The notes beneath the pieces are model-generated. The model was given only the letters and a program-made list of their open reading frames with translations. It searched no databases and had not been told where the DNA came from. This document shows positions 50,038 to 64,000 of a DNA stretch of 64,000 nt, piece after piece; position 1 is the stretch's first letter, and the number at the start of each line of letters is the position of its first letter. The stretch lies in contig CBFDEM010000058.1 of NCBI GenBank assembly GCA_965603825.1, positions 783,424 to 847,423 on the forward strand, written 5' to 3'. Made by a program: the position numbers and the translations under genes. Source of the stretch: Blepharisma stoltei ATCC 30299. Taxonomy: Eukaryota > Protista > Ciliophora.

Positions 50038-51306
50038 TTAACTTTGGCTTAATTTAAGTTTCAGCTGCTCCAAGAGTTCAGCCTGCTGTGATTCTGTCAT
50101 TCGCATCACCTGTGCCATCATATAAGCTACGCTTGGAGCTTGCTTAATTACAATTGACTGCACCCACACGCAGGTAAACATTCCCATCATGAGTTGGCAA
50201 TCCATTCTGTCTGTCATTCCACCATGTCCTGGTATCGAGTTTCCAAAGTCCTTTATATGAAAAGCTCTCTTCACTCCCGAAGCGAAAAATCCTCCAAAAG
50301 GAGCGATGAAGCCTGCGAAAAATCCCAAAACCATTGAGTGGACTTCTAAGCTTGTAACATTCACATAAGGCAGCCCAATGTAACTGAAAATCCACGGCAA
50401 CTCTCTAACTTTTCTTATTAAAAGCTCTCCAGTGTCACAGTGCAAAGAGGTGAAAGGTGTAAGCGTGAACGAGCTTTGAGGGCACACCATGTACTCGAAT
50501 TGTGCCAAAAAGTGAGAGAACTATGTTAAAATTACGAAATAAGCCCACACTATTGTTGAAATCAAACCGCCTATGAAGCCTTCCCATGTTTTGTTTGGAG
50601 ATAGTTTGATCAAAGGCGTTCTTCCCAAAAAGACTCCAAATATATAAGCAAAACAGTCATTTGTGATGACCAGTGAGGCAGGAAGCAAGAACCAAATCAG
50701 CCCATTGTAAGCGTTGATTATAACAGTTGTGCCTTGTGTAACCACAAGCATGCAGGTAATGTGTGTCCATCCAAAAATCCTAAACTGGTATCTATACTGC
50801 CCTTTCCTCAGCGAGATTACAAAAAGGCAAATTCCTATAACATACATGATAAAGCTGAGTAAGTAGCTGTAATTGTAGACAAACTAACTAGGAATTACTG
50901 CAACTGCATCGTATTCGTGCAAAAATCCGCGGTCCTTGAGGAACATTGCTGTTACGAAGATTTCAGTCAGAACAAAAAAGTATCAATTAATTACAAAGAA
51001 AAAGGGCAATTTTTGGTCTCTGTGCTCATCTCTCTTTAAAGAAATGATTTCTTTAAAAATGCACGTGTTGATGAAAAGGACTAGTAAGCAGCAATAGAAG
51101 TGCCCTGCAGCCACGATCAATAAGAAGCTGCCGATCATAATAAAAGTTGTGATTGTTCGGGTCTTGAAACTTGAGAGTCTTGCACTTAATGGGGCTCTGA
51201 TTTTAGTCACAGGAGCATCTGATTCAGAAGTTTGAGAGTCACTTGCGTATTTCATTTTGTTTGCAGGCTGCCGTGGAGGCTGGGCATCAGACATCTTATC
51301 TTTCAT
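50038..51306 (-). CDS. CDS1: Phosphatidate cytidylyltransferase (CDP-DAG synthase); two 15-nt introns
   Basis: LIKLSPNKTWEGFIGG, FGGFFASGVKRAFHIKDFG.SIPGHGGMTDRMDCQ. Confidence 0.93.
50521..50535 (-). other. 15-nt intron GTAATTTTAACATAG
   Basis: Contains the in-frame TAG; A at position 10. Confidence 0.9.
50884..50898 (-). other. 15-nt intron GTAATTCCTAGTTAG
   Basis: Contains the in-frame TAG; A at position 10. Confidence 0.9.
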
Positions 51307-51910
51307 AATATGTTATTACAATTATATTAAAAATAGGAAGATTTCATAGTTTTTGCTGATAAGGGAAATGACTATTCTGGCATCAAAAATATATAGTGAG
51401 GTAGAGACATTGATTTTGGCTTTAATTAGTTATATTAATGCAGCACTAATTTAGCCAAGTTTTGATAACTACTGCTTCGTTTAGTATTCACTGCGAAAAG
51501 AAATTTAATCACTTAATTGCTGATTTCGCTTTATAAATAAGACTTATAATCAGCTATATCATAATAGAATGCTGATGACGTCATGCTTCACGAGCTCTTA
51601 GATTTTTATGTATGTAAGTTCAATATGAATAAATTCATTCTCAATGCTTCAATTTTCAACTTTTTATACTCAAAACTTTTACTCAAAAGTTCAGTAATAG
51701 CAATATCATCTTCCTCAAAAAAAGGATTAGAGTTAATTAAATAGCTCTCTCTAGTTATTTAAATAGTTTAAATTAATCTTATTTTTCAAATCAGTAATTT
51801 GATATTGCTTCCCATTTTTATGGCAATTAAAGAACACTGGATTAATATAATAATTCAAAAATACTCTTTAAAATTCTCATTTCTGATATTTAGATATGAT
51901 AGGATTTAAT

Positions 51911-53800
51911 ATGATGGATGAGAATCGAACTTCCTCTGAAAACACTGCACCCCAATTTCGACGGCACTCTAAAAGGCGATTCACCGAAACCAACGCTGGC
52001 CATTTTGAGGCAGAAGCCATCAAAAAGACTTTGAATTCTTTACCCAAACTTCCGGATGGCCAAAGGCTTGGCATTTATAGCCTTTTCGCAGTCTACGCCA
52101 ACACCAGTGATATTAATCTGAATATTCCAAACACCCTAATAAGGATCGATAACGAATCGACGTATTTGCTTAGAACTAACGACTCTGGAAAAATTGTGTC
52201 TCGCTCTTGCAACGATGACGATTTCTTTCATTTCTTACAGACGAAGAGAGCTTCAACTTTCTTCTACAAAACTCTTTACAAAGAAAGCATGGTCTTTAAT
52301 TCCAAAAGCAGCGCAGAAGTCTTTTGAAAATCATCCAAGGACTGGCCAGCTCTTATTCAGTCTTGCATTCAATGCAAAACGAAGCCCAATTCAATTACAA
52401 GAGCACTCTGAAGGGCTGGCATGAAAACTAAATACTACACAATTATTAATCGCCAACAGCAGACTGAGCCGAAAACCCCAAGAAAATGCACGATGCCAAG
52501 CATGTACCATAGTAGAAAAAGTCAAGTAGATTTTAAGTACACAAACATGATCCTCAAGACCTCCCGATCGATGAACAACCCTTACAAAGTCAACCTGACG
52601 TCTCGAAAGAGTCTTGAAAAGGTAAAGATTGAAAAAGCTGGCACTTTGAAAAACAGGGAAAAGCCTGCGCCTGATCCTCAAGAGCCGACTGAAAAGCCGA
52701 ATGAATTGATAGTGAACACAAGAGCCCCAGAAAGTCTTTTCGTGGTTGAAGATCCTCTCAAGGAAAACGACCTCGAGCAACTGGTAAATGAATTAATTGA
52801 TTTTTTGAATATCAATATTTATCGAGACCAAAAGCTGATTGGGATTGTTCTTGATTTTATCCGCGATCAAGATGAAAATTGGTTTCTATTAGATTGCAAG
52901 GAAATTTCAGCGGTCAATAATTATATTGCCACAAAAGGCAAAAGAAAAGCACAGATGATTGGGCAGGAATCGAGAACGAGGCTAAGTATAGACACCACGA
53001 AGCTGAAATTCAAAAATCTTAAGACCGGGGTGGATGAAGACATTGATGAAAAGCAGGCCTGCCCGTTTGTAATCAGATCTCCACCTCCACCGCCATCTTC
53101 AGGCTTGATCAAAAAATCAACGCAAGATTTAATGGAGCATTGAAATAAAGTCAACCAAAAACTTGAGACAGTGCTCAATAAGAAGCCTTCAAATAAGTTT
53201 AGCAATGCTAGCGTCCAAGAGCAGAGCATTAAAGCTTATCAAGCAAGATTCAATTTAAAAAATGGGCTTTTAGATGTCAGTGAGCAGTCAAGTTCTAATG
53301 ATATATCACCTCCACAACTGTCTCCACCCACTTCGAACTCATTGTGATCTGATGATAAGGACGAACACATCAATAAATGCCTGTATAATGTTTTAGAAAA
53401 ATTCGAAGAAATGAATATGAACGCTGAGCTATTGAAGGTGAGGCAGCAAAATTTAATTCGCAAATATGGAGGAGAAGATTTTTGGACAAGATTTATTGAC
53501 AGCTTATATAAGAAAATCATGTCTACTGACTGCCCGCTTAAAAAGTATTTTTTGAGCTCAAGCCTGACAATGATAACAAATGGGATGCATAAGGTCTTCA
53601 ATGGCTGCGCAAGCTTGCAATTTAGAAGAAAAATAAAAGCTGCACATCAAAATATGGGAATTCAAGAGAGTGAATTTTTGACCTACTCTAGCCTCTTTGA
53701 AGAAACACTCAATGAGTTCAATATTGAAGAATGCGACAAAGAGATGATTGTTTCACAAATAAGGATGATGAAAACATTGGTATGCCAGCAGCCAACATAA
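51911..53800 (+). CDS. ATP-grasp-like + C-terminal truncated (2/2) globin protein, paralog 1 (629 aa)
   Basis: Single frame through four TGAs, each aligned to a TGG in paralog 2. C-terminus has KYGG..F...LY....D..LKKYF...AAH.NMGI.E.EF. Confidence 0.85.
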
Positions 53801-54524
53801 AAATAATAGCTAGTCTATATTAATTTAATTAATACAATTTAAAGTACTTTCGTTATAAGAAAAAGAATACTATGATATATCTTTAAGGTTTAAATAAAAT
53901 CTTTTGTTTAAATTGATATCAATTGATTATTAACCCAGTAGCCTGTAGACAATTATTACATAAAATATGAAATTTTCCATCATAGAATCTAAAAGAAAAG
54001 CTATTAGTTTTAATCCAATTCAGAGCTGGATCTAGCTCAGCATTTATCTGCTGATTAAGATCCATTCTTGAAGACTTATGAGGCCTACTTAATCGAGTGA
54101 AGCATGCAAGCAAGCAAGCAATATATAATCCATAAGAGCATGCACAGTCCATTCAAAATACAATGTTTCTCATTCAACCTACCATAATTTTAAGAATTGG
54201 AAATCTTATAAATCCAATGAATCTTTTGAATTTATATAGATTTTGAGCAGAACTTAGTTCTTAGGCAGTGAAAGCCATCATTTTATAAAAATTAAATCAA
54301 TGCTGATTAAATATATCAATAGTTAGTCAAATTAAATAATTATGAAATATTTTGCAAAGATGTTGAATAATTATTATTGTTAACTTAATTTAATTTCCTT
54401 AATAACTTTCAATCAAATAGCAGACCACACAATTTAACGAGTTATGAGGAGGAAATTTAAATGTTATATAAGATAGGATTTCATATTTCTGATGGTCTTG
54501 GATAAATAAAATATCCAAAATTAC

Positions 54525-56459
54525 ATGGACGAACGCAAATTTCTCTCTGGAACATTGAGCATTCCTCATCCGAGGTCCTCCTTCAGAAGCATCACAACTG
54601 CAGTAAATAACCATTTGGAAGAAGAAGCAGCCAAGAAAAGCTTCAACTCTCTGCCCAAGCTCCCAGATGGGCAACGGCTTGGTATATATAGCCTTTTTGC
54701 TGTATATGCCAATTCGAGCGACATCAATGTGAATATTCCTATAACATTAATCCGAGTGGACAACGCTGGATCTCTTTACCTGCTGAAAACAGACGAAAAT
54801 GGGACAATTGTCTCGAGAGCATGCTCTGATAATGACTTCTTTTACCCTAATGGGAACATGAAAAAAGCGAAAAGTGAGATCTATTTTTATAAAACTTTAT
54901 ACCGAGAAAGCCATGTCCTGAACTCGAGAGAAAGTGCAGAGCTCTTTTGGAAGCAGTCCAAAGACTGGCCAGCAATGATACAGTGCTGCGTTCAATGCAA
55001 ATCCAAACCGACTTCAGTTACAAGAGCTGTCTGGAGGGCAGGCGTGAAAACCAGGTATTGTACAATAATAAACCGTCAGCAAGTCAGCGACTCCAAAGCC
55101 AAAAAGTCGTCTCCCAACCTGTACCAAAAGAAAAAGAGTTTGTCTATTTTAGGTGATTTTAAGTACACTAATATGATTCTCAAAACCTCAAGATCAGTTA
55201 ATAATCCATTCAAAGTCAACTTAACAGGACGAGCAAGTGTTAATGAAAAACCCAAATTCGAAAGAACGATGACAATGAAAAACAAGGACAACCGAAATGC
55301 TGATACAAAGGAGCATCATCATGGGCTCATTGTCAATACACGAGCTGCAGAAAGTATTCTTGTTGTGGATGACCCAATCAAGGCTGGTGGCCTAGATCCC
55401 ATTGTGGCGGAGATTATTGATTTTTTGAATATCAATATTTATAAAAACCAAGAATTAAAAGGAATTGTGCTTGACTTCGTCCATGATAAGGATAATAGAT
55501 GGGTCCTTTTGGACTGCAAAGAGATTTCTACTCACAACCGTTCTCCGTCAATCACCAGCACTAAAAAATTCCAGTCAATAAGCCAGACTAGTAGGTCTCG
55601 TCTTGGCTCAGAACCTGAAACCGTTTCTACAAGCAGCCGAAAAAGTTCAGAAAGTTCGCCATTAAAGTATAGGTCTTCACAACTAACTATAAATGCATCA
55701 GAAGAAAAGCAAGCTTGCCCATTTGTGATTCGGTCTCCTCGTCCTCCTCCAAGCCCTGTCAGCAACTCTGCCCAAGGACTTGTCGATAGATGGAATCGGG
55801 TGAATCAGAAACTTGAGCTTATATTAAACCTGAAGCCTTCAAACGAAATTAAAAATGCAAACATCGAAGAGCAAAGCATCAAGGCTTATAGCACAAGATA
55901 TATCCTAAAAAATTCAGTAGCTGAGACTGGAGAGCAGTCAACTGAAAGCGAAAGGTCAGCTCCATCTCCTCCCCATATGTCTCATCCAACCTCTAATGCT
56001 TTGTGGACAGACGAGAACAATGATCATATTAACAGATGCTTTACAGACGCCATCGGCAGAATTGAAGAAATGAACATGAACACAGAACTTTTAAAAGTGA
56101 AGAGCCAAAATCTAGTCTTAAAGTACGGAGGCGATACCTTTTGGAATAGCTTTATTCAAAGCTTATATAAAAAAGTGATGTTTGAGTCCACACTCAAGAG
56201 ATATTTCACAAGGTCAAACATAGACATGATCATGAATGGGATGAATAAAGTTTTTAACGGATGCGCAACTTTGCAGTTTAGGAGGAAAATTAAAGCTGCT
56301 CATCAGAATATGGGGATTCCAGAGAGAGACTTTTCTATATATTCAGCACTTTTTGAGGATACTCTGAATGAGTTTAATATTGAAGAGAGAGATAAGAGTA
56401 TGATAATGTCGCAGATTAAGTCTATGAAGTGCTTGATTTGCCAAACTCCGAATCAATAA
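54525..56459 (+). CDS. ATP-grasp-like + C-terminal truncated (2/2) globin protein, paralog 2 (644 aa)
   Basis: Intact ORF, colinear with paralog 1. Globin domain at about 56109-56459. Confidence 0.88.
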   Translation: MDERKFLSGTLSIPHPRSSFRSITTAVNNHLEEEAAKKSFNSLPKLPDGQRLGIYSLFAVYANSSDINVNIPITLIRVDNAGSLYLLKTDENGTIVSRACSDNDFFYPNGNMKKAKSEIYFYKTLYRESHVLNSRESAELFWKQSKDWPAMIQCCVQCKSKPTSVTRAVWRAGVKTRYCTIINRQQVSDSKAKKSSPNLYQKKKSLSILGDFKYTNMILKTSRSVNNPFKVNLTGRASVNEKPKFERTMTMKNKDNRNADTKEHHHGLIVNTRAAESILVVDDPIKAGGLDPIVAEIIDFLNINIYKNQELKGIVLDFVHDKDNRWVLLDCKEISTHNRSPSITSTKKFQSISQTSRSRLGSEPETVSTSSRKSSESSPLKYRSSQLTINASEEKQACPFVIRSPRPPPSPVSNSAQGLVDRWNRVNQKLELILNLKPSNEIKNANIEEQSIKAYSTRYILKNSVAETGEQSTESERSAPSPPHMSHPTSNALWTDENNDHINRCFTDAIGRIEEMNMNTELLKVKSQNLVLKYGGDTFWNSFIQSLYKKVMFESTLKRYFTRSNIDMIMNGMNKVFNGCATLQFRRKIKAAHQNMGIPERDFSIYSALFEDTLNEFNIEERDKSMIMSQIKSMKCLICQTPNQ

Positions 56460-56584
56460 TGCCAAATTAATAAAAATTCTTCGTTTAACGGAATAATTAT
56501 AAATCATTATAAGGGTTCTATTTTGTAACGGACTTATATAAAAGCGTAAAATGATTAATTAGCTTACATTAGAAGTGATATAGC

Positions 56585-57550
56585 TTATCTGCATATAAGA
56601 CACTTCATCGACCTGATTTGGGACATTATTGCAACTTTATCCCTCTCTTCGACTCCAAATTCAACTAGTGTACTTTCAAAAAGATCACAATAAGTGTTAA
56701 ACTCTTTTTCTGTAATTCCCATATTAATATGTGCTGCCTTGATTCTTCTTCGGAACTGCATTGTCGCACAGCCGTTAAAAACCTGAAACATCCCCCACGT
56801 GATCATCTCCAAATTTGACGAGCTAAAATACTTGTCAAGTCCATAGTCAGGAGACATTATTTTTTGGTACAAAGATTCAATAAATTCTTTCCAAAATTCG
56901 TCACCACCATATTTTCTCACAAGGTTTTGAGTTTTTACTTTCAAAAGTTCTGTATTCATGTTCATCTCGTCGATTTTTCCTGCAATGTCTGCGAAGCATT
57001 TTTTTACATGCAAAGCTGTCTTGTCGTTCCATATGGTGCTGACTGGAGGAGACTGAGCAGGCGGGACCTCACTGTCTGGCTCTGATTCACTTGAGTTTAA
57101 GGTTGGGTTTCCTCTTATGTTATATCAAGACTGATAAGCCTTTATGCTTTGCTCCTTAATGTTTGAGCTTTTCATGCTTGGAGATGGTTTTAGGCTTATA
57201 ATTTGCTCTAGTTTTTGATTCACTTTGTTTCATCTTTCGAATAGATCTTTCTCTGAAAGGCAAGTAGGACTGTGAGCTTGCTGCCGAGGAGAAAGTTTTA
57301 GCTTAAAAGGGCAAATTTCAAGTTGCTCTTCAGCAGAAGCTGCAGGGATATCTTGAAGGTCTAAAGAAGTCGGGATTGCAAGAGAAATCTTTTTTCGAGG
57401 CGTTCGAACTTGTGTAGGGGACTTGGGACTTTGTAAATCATGTTCGGAATCTGTCCTACCCTTAATAGGAAGTTTTAAATCTTTTCTTTTAAAAATAAAT
57501 CTTGGGGAGCCTTTAGATTTCACGCTCAGGAGATTTAAATGACGATCCAT
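56585..57550 (-). CDS. Truncated-globin protein, paralog 3 (321 aa; lacks the ATP-grasp-like domain)
   Basis: ATG 57550 (MDRHL). Shares CPF..SP, W-NKVNQKLE, EQSIKAY and the globin domain with paralogs 1 and 2. Two TGA=Trp. Confidence 0.85.
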
Positions 57551-61630: not shown

Positions 61631-64000
61631 TGTTAGGGTGTTAGGGTGTTAGGGTGTTAGGGTGTTAGGGTGTTAGGGTGTTAGGGTGTTAGGGTGTTAG
61701 GGTGTTAGGGTGTTAGGGTGTTAGGGTGTTAGGGTGTTAGGGTGTTAGGGTGTTAGGGTGTTAGGGTGTTAGGGTGTTAGGGGTGTTAGGGTGTTAGGGT
61801 GTTAGGGTGTTAGGGTGTTAGGGTGTTAGGGTGTTAGGGTGTTAGGGTGTTAGGGTGTTAGGGTGTTAGGGTGTTAGGGTGTTAGGGTGTTAGGGTGTTA
61901 GGGTGTTAGGGTGTTAGGGTGTTAGGGTGTTAGGGTGTTAGGGTGTTAGGGTGTTAGGGTGTTAGGGTGTTAGGGTGTTAGGGTGTTAGGGTGTTAGGGT
62001 GTTAGGGTGTTAGGGTGTTAGGGTGTTAGGGTGTTAGGGTGTTAGGGTGTTAGGGTGTTAGGGTGTTAGGGTGTTAGGGTGTTAGGGTGTTAGGGTGTTA
62101 GGGTGTTAGGGTGTTAGGGTGTTAGGGTGTTAGGGTGTTAGGGTGTTAGGGTGTTAGGGTGTTAGGGTGTTAGGGTGTTAGGGTGTTAGGGTGTTAGGGT
62201 GTTAGGGTGTTAGGGTGTTAGGGTGTTAGGGTGTTAGGGTGTTAGGGTGTTAGGGTGTTAGGGTGTTAGGGTGTTAGGGTGTTAGGGTGTTAGGGTGTTA
62301 GGGTGTTTAGGGTGTTAGGGTGTTAGGGTGTTAGGGTGTTAGGGTGTTAGGGTGTTAGGGTGTTAGGGTGTTAGGGTGTTAGGGTGTTAGGGTGTTAGGG
62401 TGTTAGGGTGTTAGGGTGTTAGGGTGTTAGGGTGTTAGGGTGTTAGGGTGTTAGGGGTGTTAGGGTGTTAGGGTGTTAGGGTGTTAGGGTGTTAGGGTGT
62501 TAGGGTGTTAGGGTGTTAGGGTGTTAGGGTGTTAGGGTGTTAGGGTGTTAGGGTGTTAGGGTGTTAGGGTGTTAGGGTGTTAGGGTGTTAGGGTGTTAGG
62601 GTGTTAGGGTGTTAGGGTGTTAGGGTGTTAGGGTGTTAGGGTGTTAGGGTGTTAGGGTGTTAGGGTGTTAGGGTGTTAGGGTGTTAGGGTGTTAGGGTGT
62701 TAGGGTGTTAGGGTGTTAGGGTGTTAGGGTGTTAGGGTGTTAGGGTGTTAGGGTGTTAGGGTGTTAGGGTGTTAGGGTGTTAGGGTGTTAGGGTGTTAGG
62801 GTGTTAGGGTGTTAGGGTGTTAGGGTGTTAGGGGTGGTTAGGGTGTTAGGGTGTTAGGGTGTTAGGGTGTTAGGGTGTTAGGGTGTTAGGGTGTTAGGGT
62901 GTTAGGGTGTTAGGGTGTTAGGGTGTTAGGGTGTTAGGGTGTTAGGGTGGGTTAGGGTGTTAGGGTGTTAGGGTGTTAGGGTGTTAGGGTGTTAGGGTGT
63001 TAGGGTGTTAGGGTGTTAGGGTGTTAGGGTGTTAGGGTGTTAGGGTGTTAGGGTGTTAGGGTGTTAGGGTGTTAGGGTGTTAGGGTGTTAGGGTGTTAGG
63101 GTGTTAGGGTGTTAGGGTGTTAGGGTGTTAGGGTGTTAGGGTGTTAGGGTGTTAGGGTGTTAGGGTGTGTTAGGGTGTTAGGGTGTTAGGGTGTTAGGGT
63201 GTTAGGGTGTTAGGGTGTTAGGGTGTTAGGGTGTTAGGGTGTTAGGGTGTTAGGGTGTTAGGGTGTTAGGGTGTTAGGGTGTTAGGGTGTTAGGGTGTTA
63301 GGGTGTTAGGGTGTTAGGGTGTTAGGGTGTTAGGGTGTTAGGGTGTTAGGGTGTTAGGGTGTTAGGGTGTTAGGGTGTTTGGGTGTTAGGGTGTTAGGGT
63401 GTTAGGGTGTTAGGGGTGTTAGGGTGTTAGGGTGTTAGGGTGTTAGGGTGTTAGGGTGTTAGGGTGTTAGGGTGTTAGGGTGTTAGGGTGTTAGGGTGTT
63501 AGGGTGTTAGGGTGTTAGGGTGTTAGGGTGTTTGGGTGTTAGGGTGTTAGGGTGTTAGGGTGTTAGGGTGTTAGGGTGTTAGGGTGTTAGGGTGTTAGGG
63601 TGTTAGGGTGTTAGGGTGTTAGGGTGTTAGGGTGTTAGGGTGTTAGGGTGTTAGGGTGTTAGGGTGTTAGGGTGTTAGGGTGTTAGGGTGTTAGGGTGTT
63701 AGGGTGTTAGGGTGTTAGGGTGTTAGGGTGTTAGGGTGTTAGGGTGTTAGGGTGTTAGGGTGTTAGGGTGTTAGGGTGTTAGGGTGTTAGGGTGTTAGGG
63801 TGTTAGGGTGTTAGGGTGTTAGGGTGTTAGGGTGTTAGGGTGTTAGGGGTGTTAGGGTGTTAGGGTGTTAGGGTGTTAGGGTGTTAGGGTGTTAGGGTGT
63901 TAGGGTGTTAGGGTGTTAGGGTGTTAGGGGGTGTTAGGGTGTTAGGGTGTTAGGGTGTTAGGGTGTTAGGGTGTTAGGGTGTTAGGGTGTTATGGGTGTT
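61631..64000 (+). repeat. Telomere (TGTTAGGG)n / (CCCTAACA)n, about 295 units
   Basis: 8-nt tandem array to the end of the window with the G-rich strand pointing outward. This is the heterotrich (Blepharisma/Stentor) repeat. Confidence 0.98.

Follow-up and report, generated by a model that had tools for sequence, protein, structure and literature searches.

The 64,000-nt stretch of Blepharisma stoltei DNA analysed here (the window; contig C58:783424-847423, up to the contig terminus) carries near its 3′ end three paralogous genes, g1, g2 and g3, each of which ends in a truncated-haemoglobin (trHb) domain. We show that the family to which they belong joins an N-terminal domain of ~300 aa with a predicted ATP-grasp fold, similar to DC4 of the trypanosomatid outer-dynein-arm (ODA) docking complex, to a linker of ~150 aa and a C-terminal trHb domain of ~120 aa. 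The trio is a subtelomeric outpost of a large B. stoltei family.

The best database matches of the window were B. stoltei proteins. This ciliate reads UGA as tryptophan, has introns of 15-16 nt and carries a telomere unit that is a permutation of CCCTAACA (PMC9942806). Translation with code 4 (UGA=Trp) left all three open reading frames intact, so the three paralogs named in the first-pass annotation of this DNA, two on the forward strand and one convergent on the reverse, are real. The four in-frame TGA codons of g1, at positions 139, 167, 411 and 479, fell in the alignment on tryptophan columns that are invariant or conserved among the paralogs, which confirms both the reading frame and the code. 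The public annotation gives the product of g3 the same length; the stop codon of g3 lies ~125 bp from that of g2, and we found no N-domain coding sequence in frame upstream of it. The member described earlier as lacking the N-terminal domain is thus g3, which is also the only clean copy of this kind in the genome. Contigs from four public runs of a single study span 51916-53811, 54490-56478 and 56553-57540, leave the spacer 53967-54360 bare, contain no joints and do not extend past the 56553-57540 span at g3. This pattern looks like transcript assemblies of three intron-less genes.

The 3′ end of the window is made up of ~2.4 kb of telomere repeat with the unit TGTTAGGG, and no telomere-like run was present elsewhere in the 64,000 nt. 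Since the window closes in these repeats at the contig end, the trio is subtelomeric, with ~4 kb between the start codon of g3 and the telomere, which marks a macronuclear chromosome end. Coordinates of the genes, domains and haem-site codons are collected in table 1.

Table 1. Features of the window, with positions counted from its first nucleotide.
Feature	Position	Strand	Remarks
g1, full-length member	51911..53800	+	629 aa; 634 aa from the ATG at 51896; one open reading frame with both domains
g1 N-terminal DC4-like domain, predicted ATP-grasp fold	52004..52930	+	N-domain hidden Markov model, 401 bits; residues 45-353 of the reading frame
g1 pre-A helix and trHb domain	53366..53797	+	Tyr B10 53507-53509; His F8 53645-53647
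g2, full-length member	54525..56459	+	644 aa (P0001); zero TGA codons
g2 N-terminal DC4-like domain, predicted ATP-grasp fold	54615..55556	+	AlphaFold2 model; contains predicted disordered insertion
g2 conserved linker	55557..56024	+	CPF motif, RWN.VN.KLE helix, EQSIKAY motif; 13-paralog alignment
g2 pre-A helix and trHb domain	56025..56456	+	Profile, AlphaFold2, Foldseek, alignment
g2 Tyr B10 codon	56166-56168	+	
g2 Phe CD1 codon	56205-56207	+	
g2 Ile E7 codon	56229-56231	+	
g2 EF-loop Cys codon	56262-56264	+	
g2 His F8 codon	56301-56303	+	
g2 Tyr G8 codon	56340-56342	+	
g3, short member	56585..57550	-	321 aa (P0033); linker and globin domain alone; two TGA codons
g3 trHb domain	56588..57013	-	Bac_globin E 0.0013; Tyr B10 56867-56869; His F8 56729-56731
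Telomere	61631..64000	+	288 exact TGTTAGGG copies and a few variant units
Phosphatidate cytidylyltransferase gene	50038-51306	-	Pfam CTP_transf_1 in three pieces

A truncated haemoglobin at the C-terminus

The first-pass annotation had proposed a group I trHb domain at the C-terminus of larger fusion proteins, and this was borne out by profile and structure comparisons. With single sequences the signal was weak. Against Pfam Bac_globin (PF01152; gathering cut-off 21 bits), a 142-aa piece of g3 scored 19.3 bits, and a g1 piece and the g2 domain 12.6 bits each; full-length g2 matched no Pfam family. The Pfam search suggested earlier therefore gave a divided answer, as the genes of the window stayed under the cut-off while 13 of 15 family members matched at E≤1, the best at 1.5e-4. 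Single-sequence phmmer searches of the PDB reached E 0.07 and worse, with group I trHbs in all of the top places. A profile built from 15 family globin domains made the match significant: Chlamydomonas THB1 (4xdi) was found at 1.8e-5 and the Tetrahymena pyriformis trHb (3aq5) at 3.6e-5, followed by C. eugametos haemoglobin, M. tuberculosis HbN and cyanobacterial GlbN, and below E 0.3 this profile matched nothing in the PDB other than group I trHbs. In a library of 1.84 billion representative proteins, the full-length family profile recovered single-domain proteins of 118-122 aa through its positions 543-653 (E 1e-13 to 1e-9). Labels in the databases agree, with 'truncated hemoglobin YjbI' and 'hemoglobin' given by IMG to two environmental relatives and a globin-profile label given by UniRef to one B. 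stoltei paralog.

Structure prediction led to the same group. The AlphaFold model of the globin domain (predicted local distance difference test score, pLDDT, 74) has the 2-on-2 alpha-helical globin fold. In a Foldseek search of the PDB, its first 26 matches were all truncated haemoglobins, led by group I, with probability 1.00 and template modelling (TM) scores by target of 0.70-0.78, and the globin of the sensor DosC appeared at ranks 41 and 45 with a TM score of about 0.5. Together, these results show that the C-terminal domain is a divergent, group I-derived truncated haemoglobin fused to other sequence.

To count residues at the haem site, we fetched every family locus of the genome and aligned the 52 distinct domains, numbered here by the g2 domain. 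The motifs listed in the first-pass annotation were all found: YGG, SLY with Tyr B10, YF with Phe CD1, IKAAH with His F8, MGI.E..F, NGCA..QFRR and those of the linker. The proximal histidine, His93 (F8), is present in 52/52 copies and aligns with His F8 of HbN, THB1 and the Tetrahymena trHb. Constant or nearly so are also Tyr34 and Gly35 of the AB hinge (each 52/52; Gly36, 50/52), the pair Phe39-Trp40 (52/52), Arg86 (52/52), Phe61 (CD1; 51/52), Gly72 (51/52) and Arg87 (49/52). Tyr48 (B10) occurs in 48/52 copies, and Tyr106 (G8, F8+13) in 44/52, the rest having Phe. In the HbN register, Ile69 would be E7 (52/52) and Met73 E11 (45/52). Both assignments are uncertain because the 3-4 residues by which the lengths differ were assigned by HMMER to the E helix in some searches and to the EF loop in another; in either alignment the family lacks the Gln residues of characterised ciliate trHbs and the GGP..Y.G stretch. 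In place of the latter the EF corner reads N-G (Asn in 40/52, Gly in 48/52). The Cys of the EF loop, put forward earlier as a conserved residue near the haem, is confined to a subclade, as Cys80 is found in 17/52 copies, with Asn in 14 and Ser in 5. Outside B. stoltei, His F8 is retained in Stentor and in environmental clades, and B10 in the distant environmental clades (sequences read by eye) varies between Cys, Leu, His and Thr.

The family domain thus shares with group I trHbs (3AQ5, 1DLW of P. caudatum, THB1 4XDI, HbN 1IDR) the 2/2 fold, the AB Gly-Gly, Tyr B10, Phe CD1 and His F8. It differs from them by its C-terminal place in a protein of 630-700 aa, by NG....(F/L)RR instead of GGP..Y.G, by Ile and Met instead of Gln at E7/E11, by an aromatic G8 (Tyr) and by a deletion of 3-4 residues in the CD/E region. 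A second comparison is offered by single-domain globins with a YGG..FW signature, which are found in ciliates and environmental eukaryotes (P0121, P0123 and P0128 among them), four B. stoltei genes included. These proteins of 118-135 aa have neither linker nor N-domain, unlike the family. The four B. stoltei genes and environmental proteins of 118 aa are the nearest of the small relatives. They share KYGG..FW with the fused domain and likewise lack GGP..Y.G, and the fused domain probably derives from this subgroup. The four B. stoltei genes lie on C18, C38, C32 and C41 (L020, L026, L027 and L028) and encode 121-135 aa (160 aa from stop to stop on C41), two of them with His for Tyr at B10.

The N-terminal domain and its link to DC4

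Pfam gave no useful match for the N-terminal pieces, and its TTL (tubulin tyrosine ligase) family (PF03133) gave none at E≤10. We therefore turn to the AlphaFold2 model of the g2 N-domain, whose core (pLDDT about 85-91) has a predicted ATP-grasp fold interrupted by a disordered insertion at model residues 158-237. The nearest structure was chain 5K of 9e78, from a Leishmania doublet microtubule (E 2.7e-8, Z 16.8, 212 residues, root-mean-square deviation 3.5 Å), followed by chain 7c of 9e5c from T. brucei (Z 15.3). TTL, D-Ala-D-Ala ligases, RimK, LysX, synapsin and TTLL6 came at Z about 10-12, the best of the next family reaching 11.7. Foldseek and a second structure aligner gave the same ranking.

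Sequence profiles pointed to the same protein. A profile of Blepharisma N-domains alone matched nothing in the PDB. Once broadened with Stentor and environmental members, it gave 'distal DC4 | ODA dDC4' (9e78_5K) as the sole match below E 0.01, a weak one (E 0.0047, 19.4 bits), with the most conserved motif of the family, ..LQKF..P.....S..RV.W, opposite ILQKFIFPKGYQNSVIRVVW of dDC4. The published model of dDC4 was built for residues 11-276 (supplement of PMC7617938), that is 266 residues, the length of 9e78_5K. This protein is described as ATP-grasp-like, sits on the DC1/DC2 coiled coil, touches the ODA alpha heavy chain and is required for normal swimming speed (PMC7617938), and DC4 orthologs occur in other flagellates including Chlamydomonas (PMC11971395). 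A0A2K3DVV8 is an example from Chlamydomonas. On these profile and model comparisons, the nearest known relative of the N-domain appears to be trypanosomatid DC4 (dDC4/pDC4; LtaP31.0090), which is both the closest structure and the only PDB match by sequence profile. The likeness has its bounds: DC4 has two paralogs, proximal and distal, against more than 50 here, and an axonemal location has been shown for DC4 alone. The globin profile found no match at E≤1 in the DC4 chain in the PDB (the 492-aa DC4 sequence was not put through Pfam), and a 2006 census reported no globins in the trypanosome genomes that it covered (PMC1457004).

Membership of the N-domain in the TTL family was considered and rejected. 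Aligned by hhalign, 49 N-domains and 12 genuine B. stoltei TTLs gave a probability of 0.2%, and the ATP-grasp fold, with Z about 10-12 to TTL and TTLL proteins, is all that they have in common. The W..E.N metal-ligand stretch of ATP-grasp enzymes has become W..L.C in the family. A Gln, an Arg and an Asp (Q153, R167 and D317 of g2) vary little or not at all across the wide family, so nucleotide binding by the N-domain may still be possible. At least 57 genuine TTL/TTLL genes were counted in the genome, a very large complement of ligases that modify tubulin.

All paralogs also carry a strongly conserved motif, DFKYT.M..KTS.S.NNPF, which in g2 lies at residues ~195-255 (window 55100-55290), within the insertion that AlphaFold predicts to be disordered. 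The motif may serve in binding or be phosphorylated.

Family size, age and relatives

The three genes had been read as a self-contained system. This view did not hold, as the genome contains at least 50 full-length members of the family. Searched with the globin profile, it yielded 53 strong loci (E≤1e-40) and the four canonical small globins; the N-domain profile yielded 51 strong loci. Both domains were present in 52 open reading frames. Allowing for a few that were clipped at the end of a locus or retrieved a second time, there are ~50 distinct full-length genes, which encode 630-716 aa in code 4. Most copies stand in head-to-tail arrays, with ~16-17 genes at C58:651-690 kb and ~15-16 at C22:175-213 kb. 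One array copy (open reading frame L003_-2_1379 of locus L003) has its globin domain cut after ~57 residues. A short copy on C36 (L015; 1044700-1047600) keeps a degenerate tail of the N-domain and has an altered C-terminus, and looks like a truncated relic.

The nearest paralogs of g1 and g2 form a pair at C59:45800-51000 (L005), where a g1-like gene is followed by a g2-like gene in the same order as in the window. Protein identity is 76-77% overall and 85% between the globin domain of g2 and its C59 copy; no g3-like gene was detected on C59. The two pairs represent an old block duplication. Between g3 and its paralogs the globin domains share 66-70% identity, and here too synonymous sites are saturated. 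Even the closest pairs had proportions of synonymous differences (pS) of 0.72-0.86, which is saturated, and the ratio of non-synonymous to synonymous substitution rates (dN/dS) was about 0.05 where dS could be computed; for most pairs saturation prevents an estimate of dS, so that dN/dS serves only as a bound. The linker has an amino-acid identity of 0.73 though its synonymous sites are saturated or nearly so. Because protein identity is high while synonymous sites are saturated, the comparison of coding sequences argues that these duplicates are old and maintained, under strong purifying selection.

The same architecture was found in a second heterotrich: Stentor coeruleus has one ortholog (OMJ86194.1, SteCoe_12330, 699 aa), in which Tyr B10 and His F8 are present. 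Further, more distant full-length relatives of ~500-720 aa come from environmental eukaryotes. One of them, a ~570-aa protein with the same two domains, is encoded on a 20-kb contig (L029; Logan SRR19603261). This contig is gene-dense, eukaryotic and GC-richer, with Arf, Sec6, NAC and HAD genes adjoining, and the readable ends of L029 and of a further environmental contig, L030, bear no telomere repeat. Since L029 is GC-richer, the ~530-aa clade may lie outside the heterotrichs, and the domain fusion may predate them. Proteins of a different build were seen in Perkinsus olseni, where P0113, P0137 and members of their clusters have 1,375-2,375 aa and up to six stretches that match the trHb profile. 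These are multi-unit truncated haemoglobins of a perkinsid.

Possible functions of the fusion protein

The reading we prefer, to which we give slightly less than an even chance, is that of a haem globin responsive to O2, nitric oxide (NO) or redox state and carried on a DC4-like docking scaffold. The globin domain would bind haem b through the invariant His F8, in a distal pocket that would be unusually hydrophobic and aromatic, with Tyr B10, Ile E7, a Met at or near E11 and Tyr G8. The N-domain may be a non-catalytic docking scaffold, by analogy with DC4, whose equivalent fold sits on the DC1/DC2 coiled coil in contact with the outer-arm dynein heavy chain. A haem-binding globin on such a scaffold would place an O2-, NO- or redox-responsive haem at a cytoskeletal site, possibly the dock of axonemal dynein. 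A change of ligand or redox state in the globin could then pass through the linker to the scaffold, and g3 would act as a free haem module. We prefer sensing to NO, O2 or reactive oxygen species (ROS) chemistry and to a purely structural role.

A more specific version, which we regard as unlikely, places the haem sensor within or on the ODA docking complex of heterotrich cilia. There, gas or redox state would tune beating at the motor, the paralogs would specify ciliary territories, and the product of g3 would compete with or modulate the others in soluble form. Caution about the axonemal idea is advised by the number of paralogs, by the absence of such a fold from the solved ciliate axoneme chains among the Foldseek matches and by the absence of the Stentor gene from the regeneration gene lists searched.

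Several observations weigh against the sensor reading as a whole. The Bac_globin scores of the genes of the window are all below the Pfam cut-off, and the polar distal residues (Gln/Thr at E7 and E11) and the EF-loop GGP..Y.G of characterised trHbN are missing, with an uncertainty of 3-4 residues in the alignment of the E helix. At 19 bits the sequence match to DC4 is weak, and location cannot be read from homology. Among the Foldseek matches, no solved chain of a ciliate axoneme had this fold, and it would be odd for a fixed structural subunit to have more than 50 paralogs. The Stentor ortholog was missing from the searchable Stentor regeneration gene lists, a weak negative given that these lists are possibly incomplete, and its identifier was also missing from the paper texts searched. 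Finally, the 'RNA' type of the four runs whose contigs cover the genes is a guess.

Some of the same evidence can be read in terms of chemistry. Among the best matches of the globin domain are known NO dioxygenases, namely group I trHbs like M. tuberculosis HbN; Tyr B10 is conserved, and a large copy number would fit a bulk or stoichiometric role. The protein could accordingly be a tethered haem enzyme or buffer that dioxygenates NO, reacts with peroxide or ROS, or buffers O2 locally, with an N-domain that only positions the globin; its purpose could be protection from the photo-oxidative stress of the pigment. We consider this somewhat improbable, as neither a reductase partner nor a reductase domain came to light, the Gln E7/E11 of characterised trHbN chemistry is absent, and the pigmented Stentor has a single copy. 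Were the globin devoid of haem, it could serve as a structural or oligomerisation module, like bacterial non-haem globin domains. The Pfam score, the non-canonical distal site and EF loop, and some distant N-domain paralogs that apparently lack the His, such as P0087, are in line with this proposal. A His F8 kept in 52/52 copies, with a nearly invariant Phe CD1 and Tyr B10, in the face of saturated synonymous divergence makes it quite unlikely in our view.

Other alternatives concern the N-domain or the genes themselves. An active, haem-regulated ATP-grasp ligase would bind ATP and, controlled by the globin, attach an amino acid or peptide to a substrate such as tubulin. Its fold, with Z about 10-12 to TTL, TTLL6, Ddl and RimK, would suit this activity, as would the near-invariant Q153, R167 and D317 of g2, which by our motif reading presumably occupy the nucleotide and Mg contact sites of TTL. 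We rate this very unlikely: hhalign to genuine B. stoltei TTLs gave 0.2% and Pfam TTL no match, the W..E.N pair of Mg ligands has been replaced by W..L.C, and published work assigns a structural docking role to DC4, the nearest relative. That the three genes are decaying duplicates or an annotation artefact of the subtelomere, as their position and the existence elsewhere in the genome of one degenerate 5′-truncated copy and one copy with a cut globin might suggest, is scarcely credible with three intact reading frames lying under transcript-like contigs and subject to strong purifying selection.

The first-pass annotation had placed the proteins close to globin-coupled sensors. In such sensors (HemAT, DosC/YddV, AfGcHK) an N-terminal 3/3 globin of the S family is followed by a C-terminal transmitter such as an MCP, GGDEF or kinase domain. 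What the family has in common with them is the idea of a haem globin linked to a second domain under its possible control. It does not belong with them: its globin is C-terminal and of the 2/2 T family, with a TM score of about 0.5 to DosC, its partner is N-terminal and has a probably non-catalytic ATP-grasp-like fold, and Pfam found no transmitter domain of that type in the full-length protein. Metazoan androglobin belongs to ciliated and flagellated cells. It likewise contains a globin within a large multidomain protein (review PMC7475203), but this is a circularly permuted 3/3 globin accompanied by a calpain-like domain and an IQ motif, and of unrelated origin.

The fusions had been set against the small single-domain trHbs of Paramecium and Tetrahymena. 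Chimeric and multi-unit T1 globins of ciliates have already been detected in silico (PMC7475203), so the fusion as such has a precedent. In our literature search on Blepharisma and Stentor, we found this general statement on chimeric T1 globins, and the partner domain, the link to DC4 and the expansion were undescribed. The present analysis assigns a partner domain to proteins that had until now only been counted in silico, and it appears to add ciliates to the range of the DC4 family, which received its name in trypanosomatids in 2025. We know of no gas-binding haem protein within the ciliary dynein-docking machinery, and to our knowledge little is known of how ciliates couple oxygen, NO or light-made oxidants to swimming. 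The family, in which a probable haem site is combined with a domain related to a dynein-dock subunit, is conserved in both Blepharisma and Stentor and has expanded to more than 50 genes in the former. It is a concrete, testable candidate for such coupling and suggests, though it does not prove, that part of the motility machinery responds to oxygen or NO. If the globin is haem-free or the protein non-ciliary, what is left is a large lineage-specific gene family.

Upstream of g1, the window contains a phosphatidate cytidylyltransferase gene that has no evident functional tie to the globin genes. Its three Pfam CTP_transf_1 pieces lie in separate open reading frames and span profile positions 1-56, 87-190 and 198-262, presumably because the gene is split by tiny introns or frame changes.

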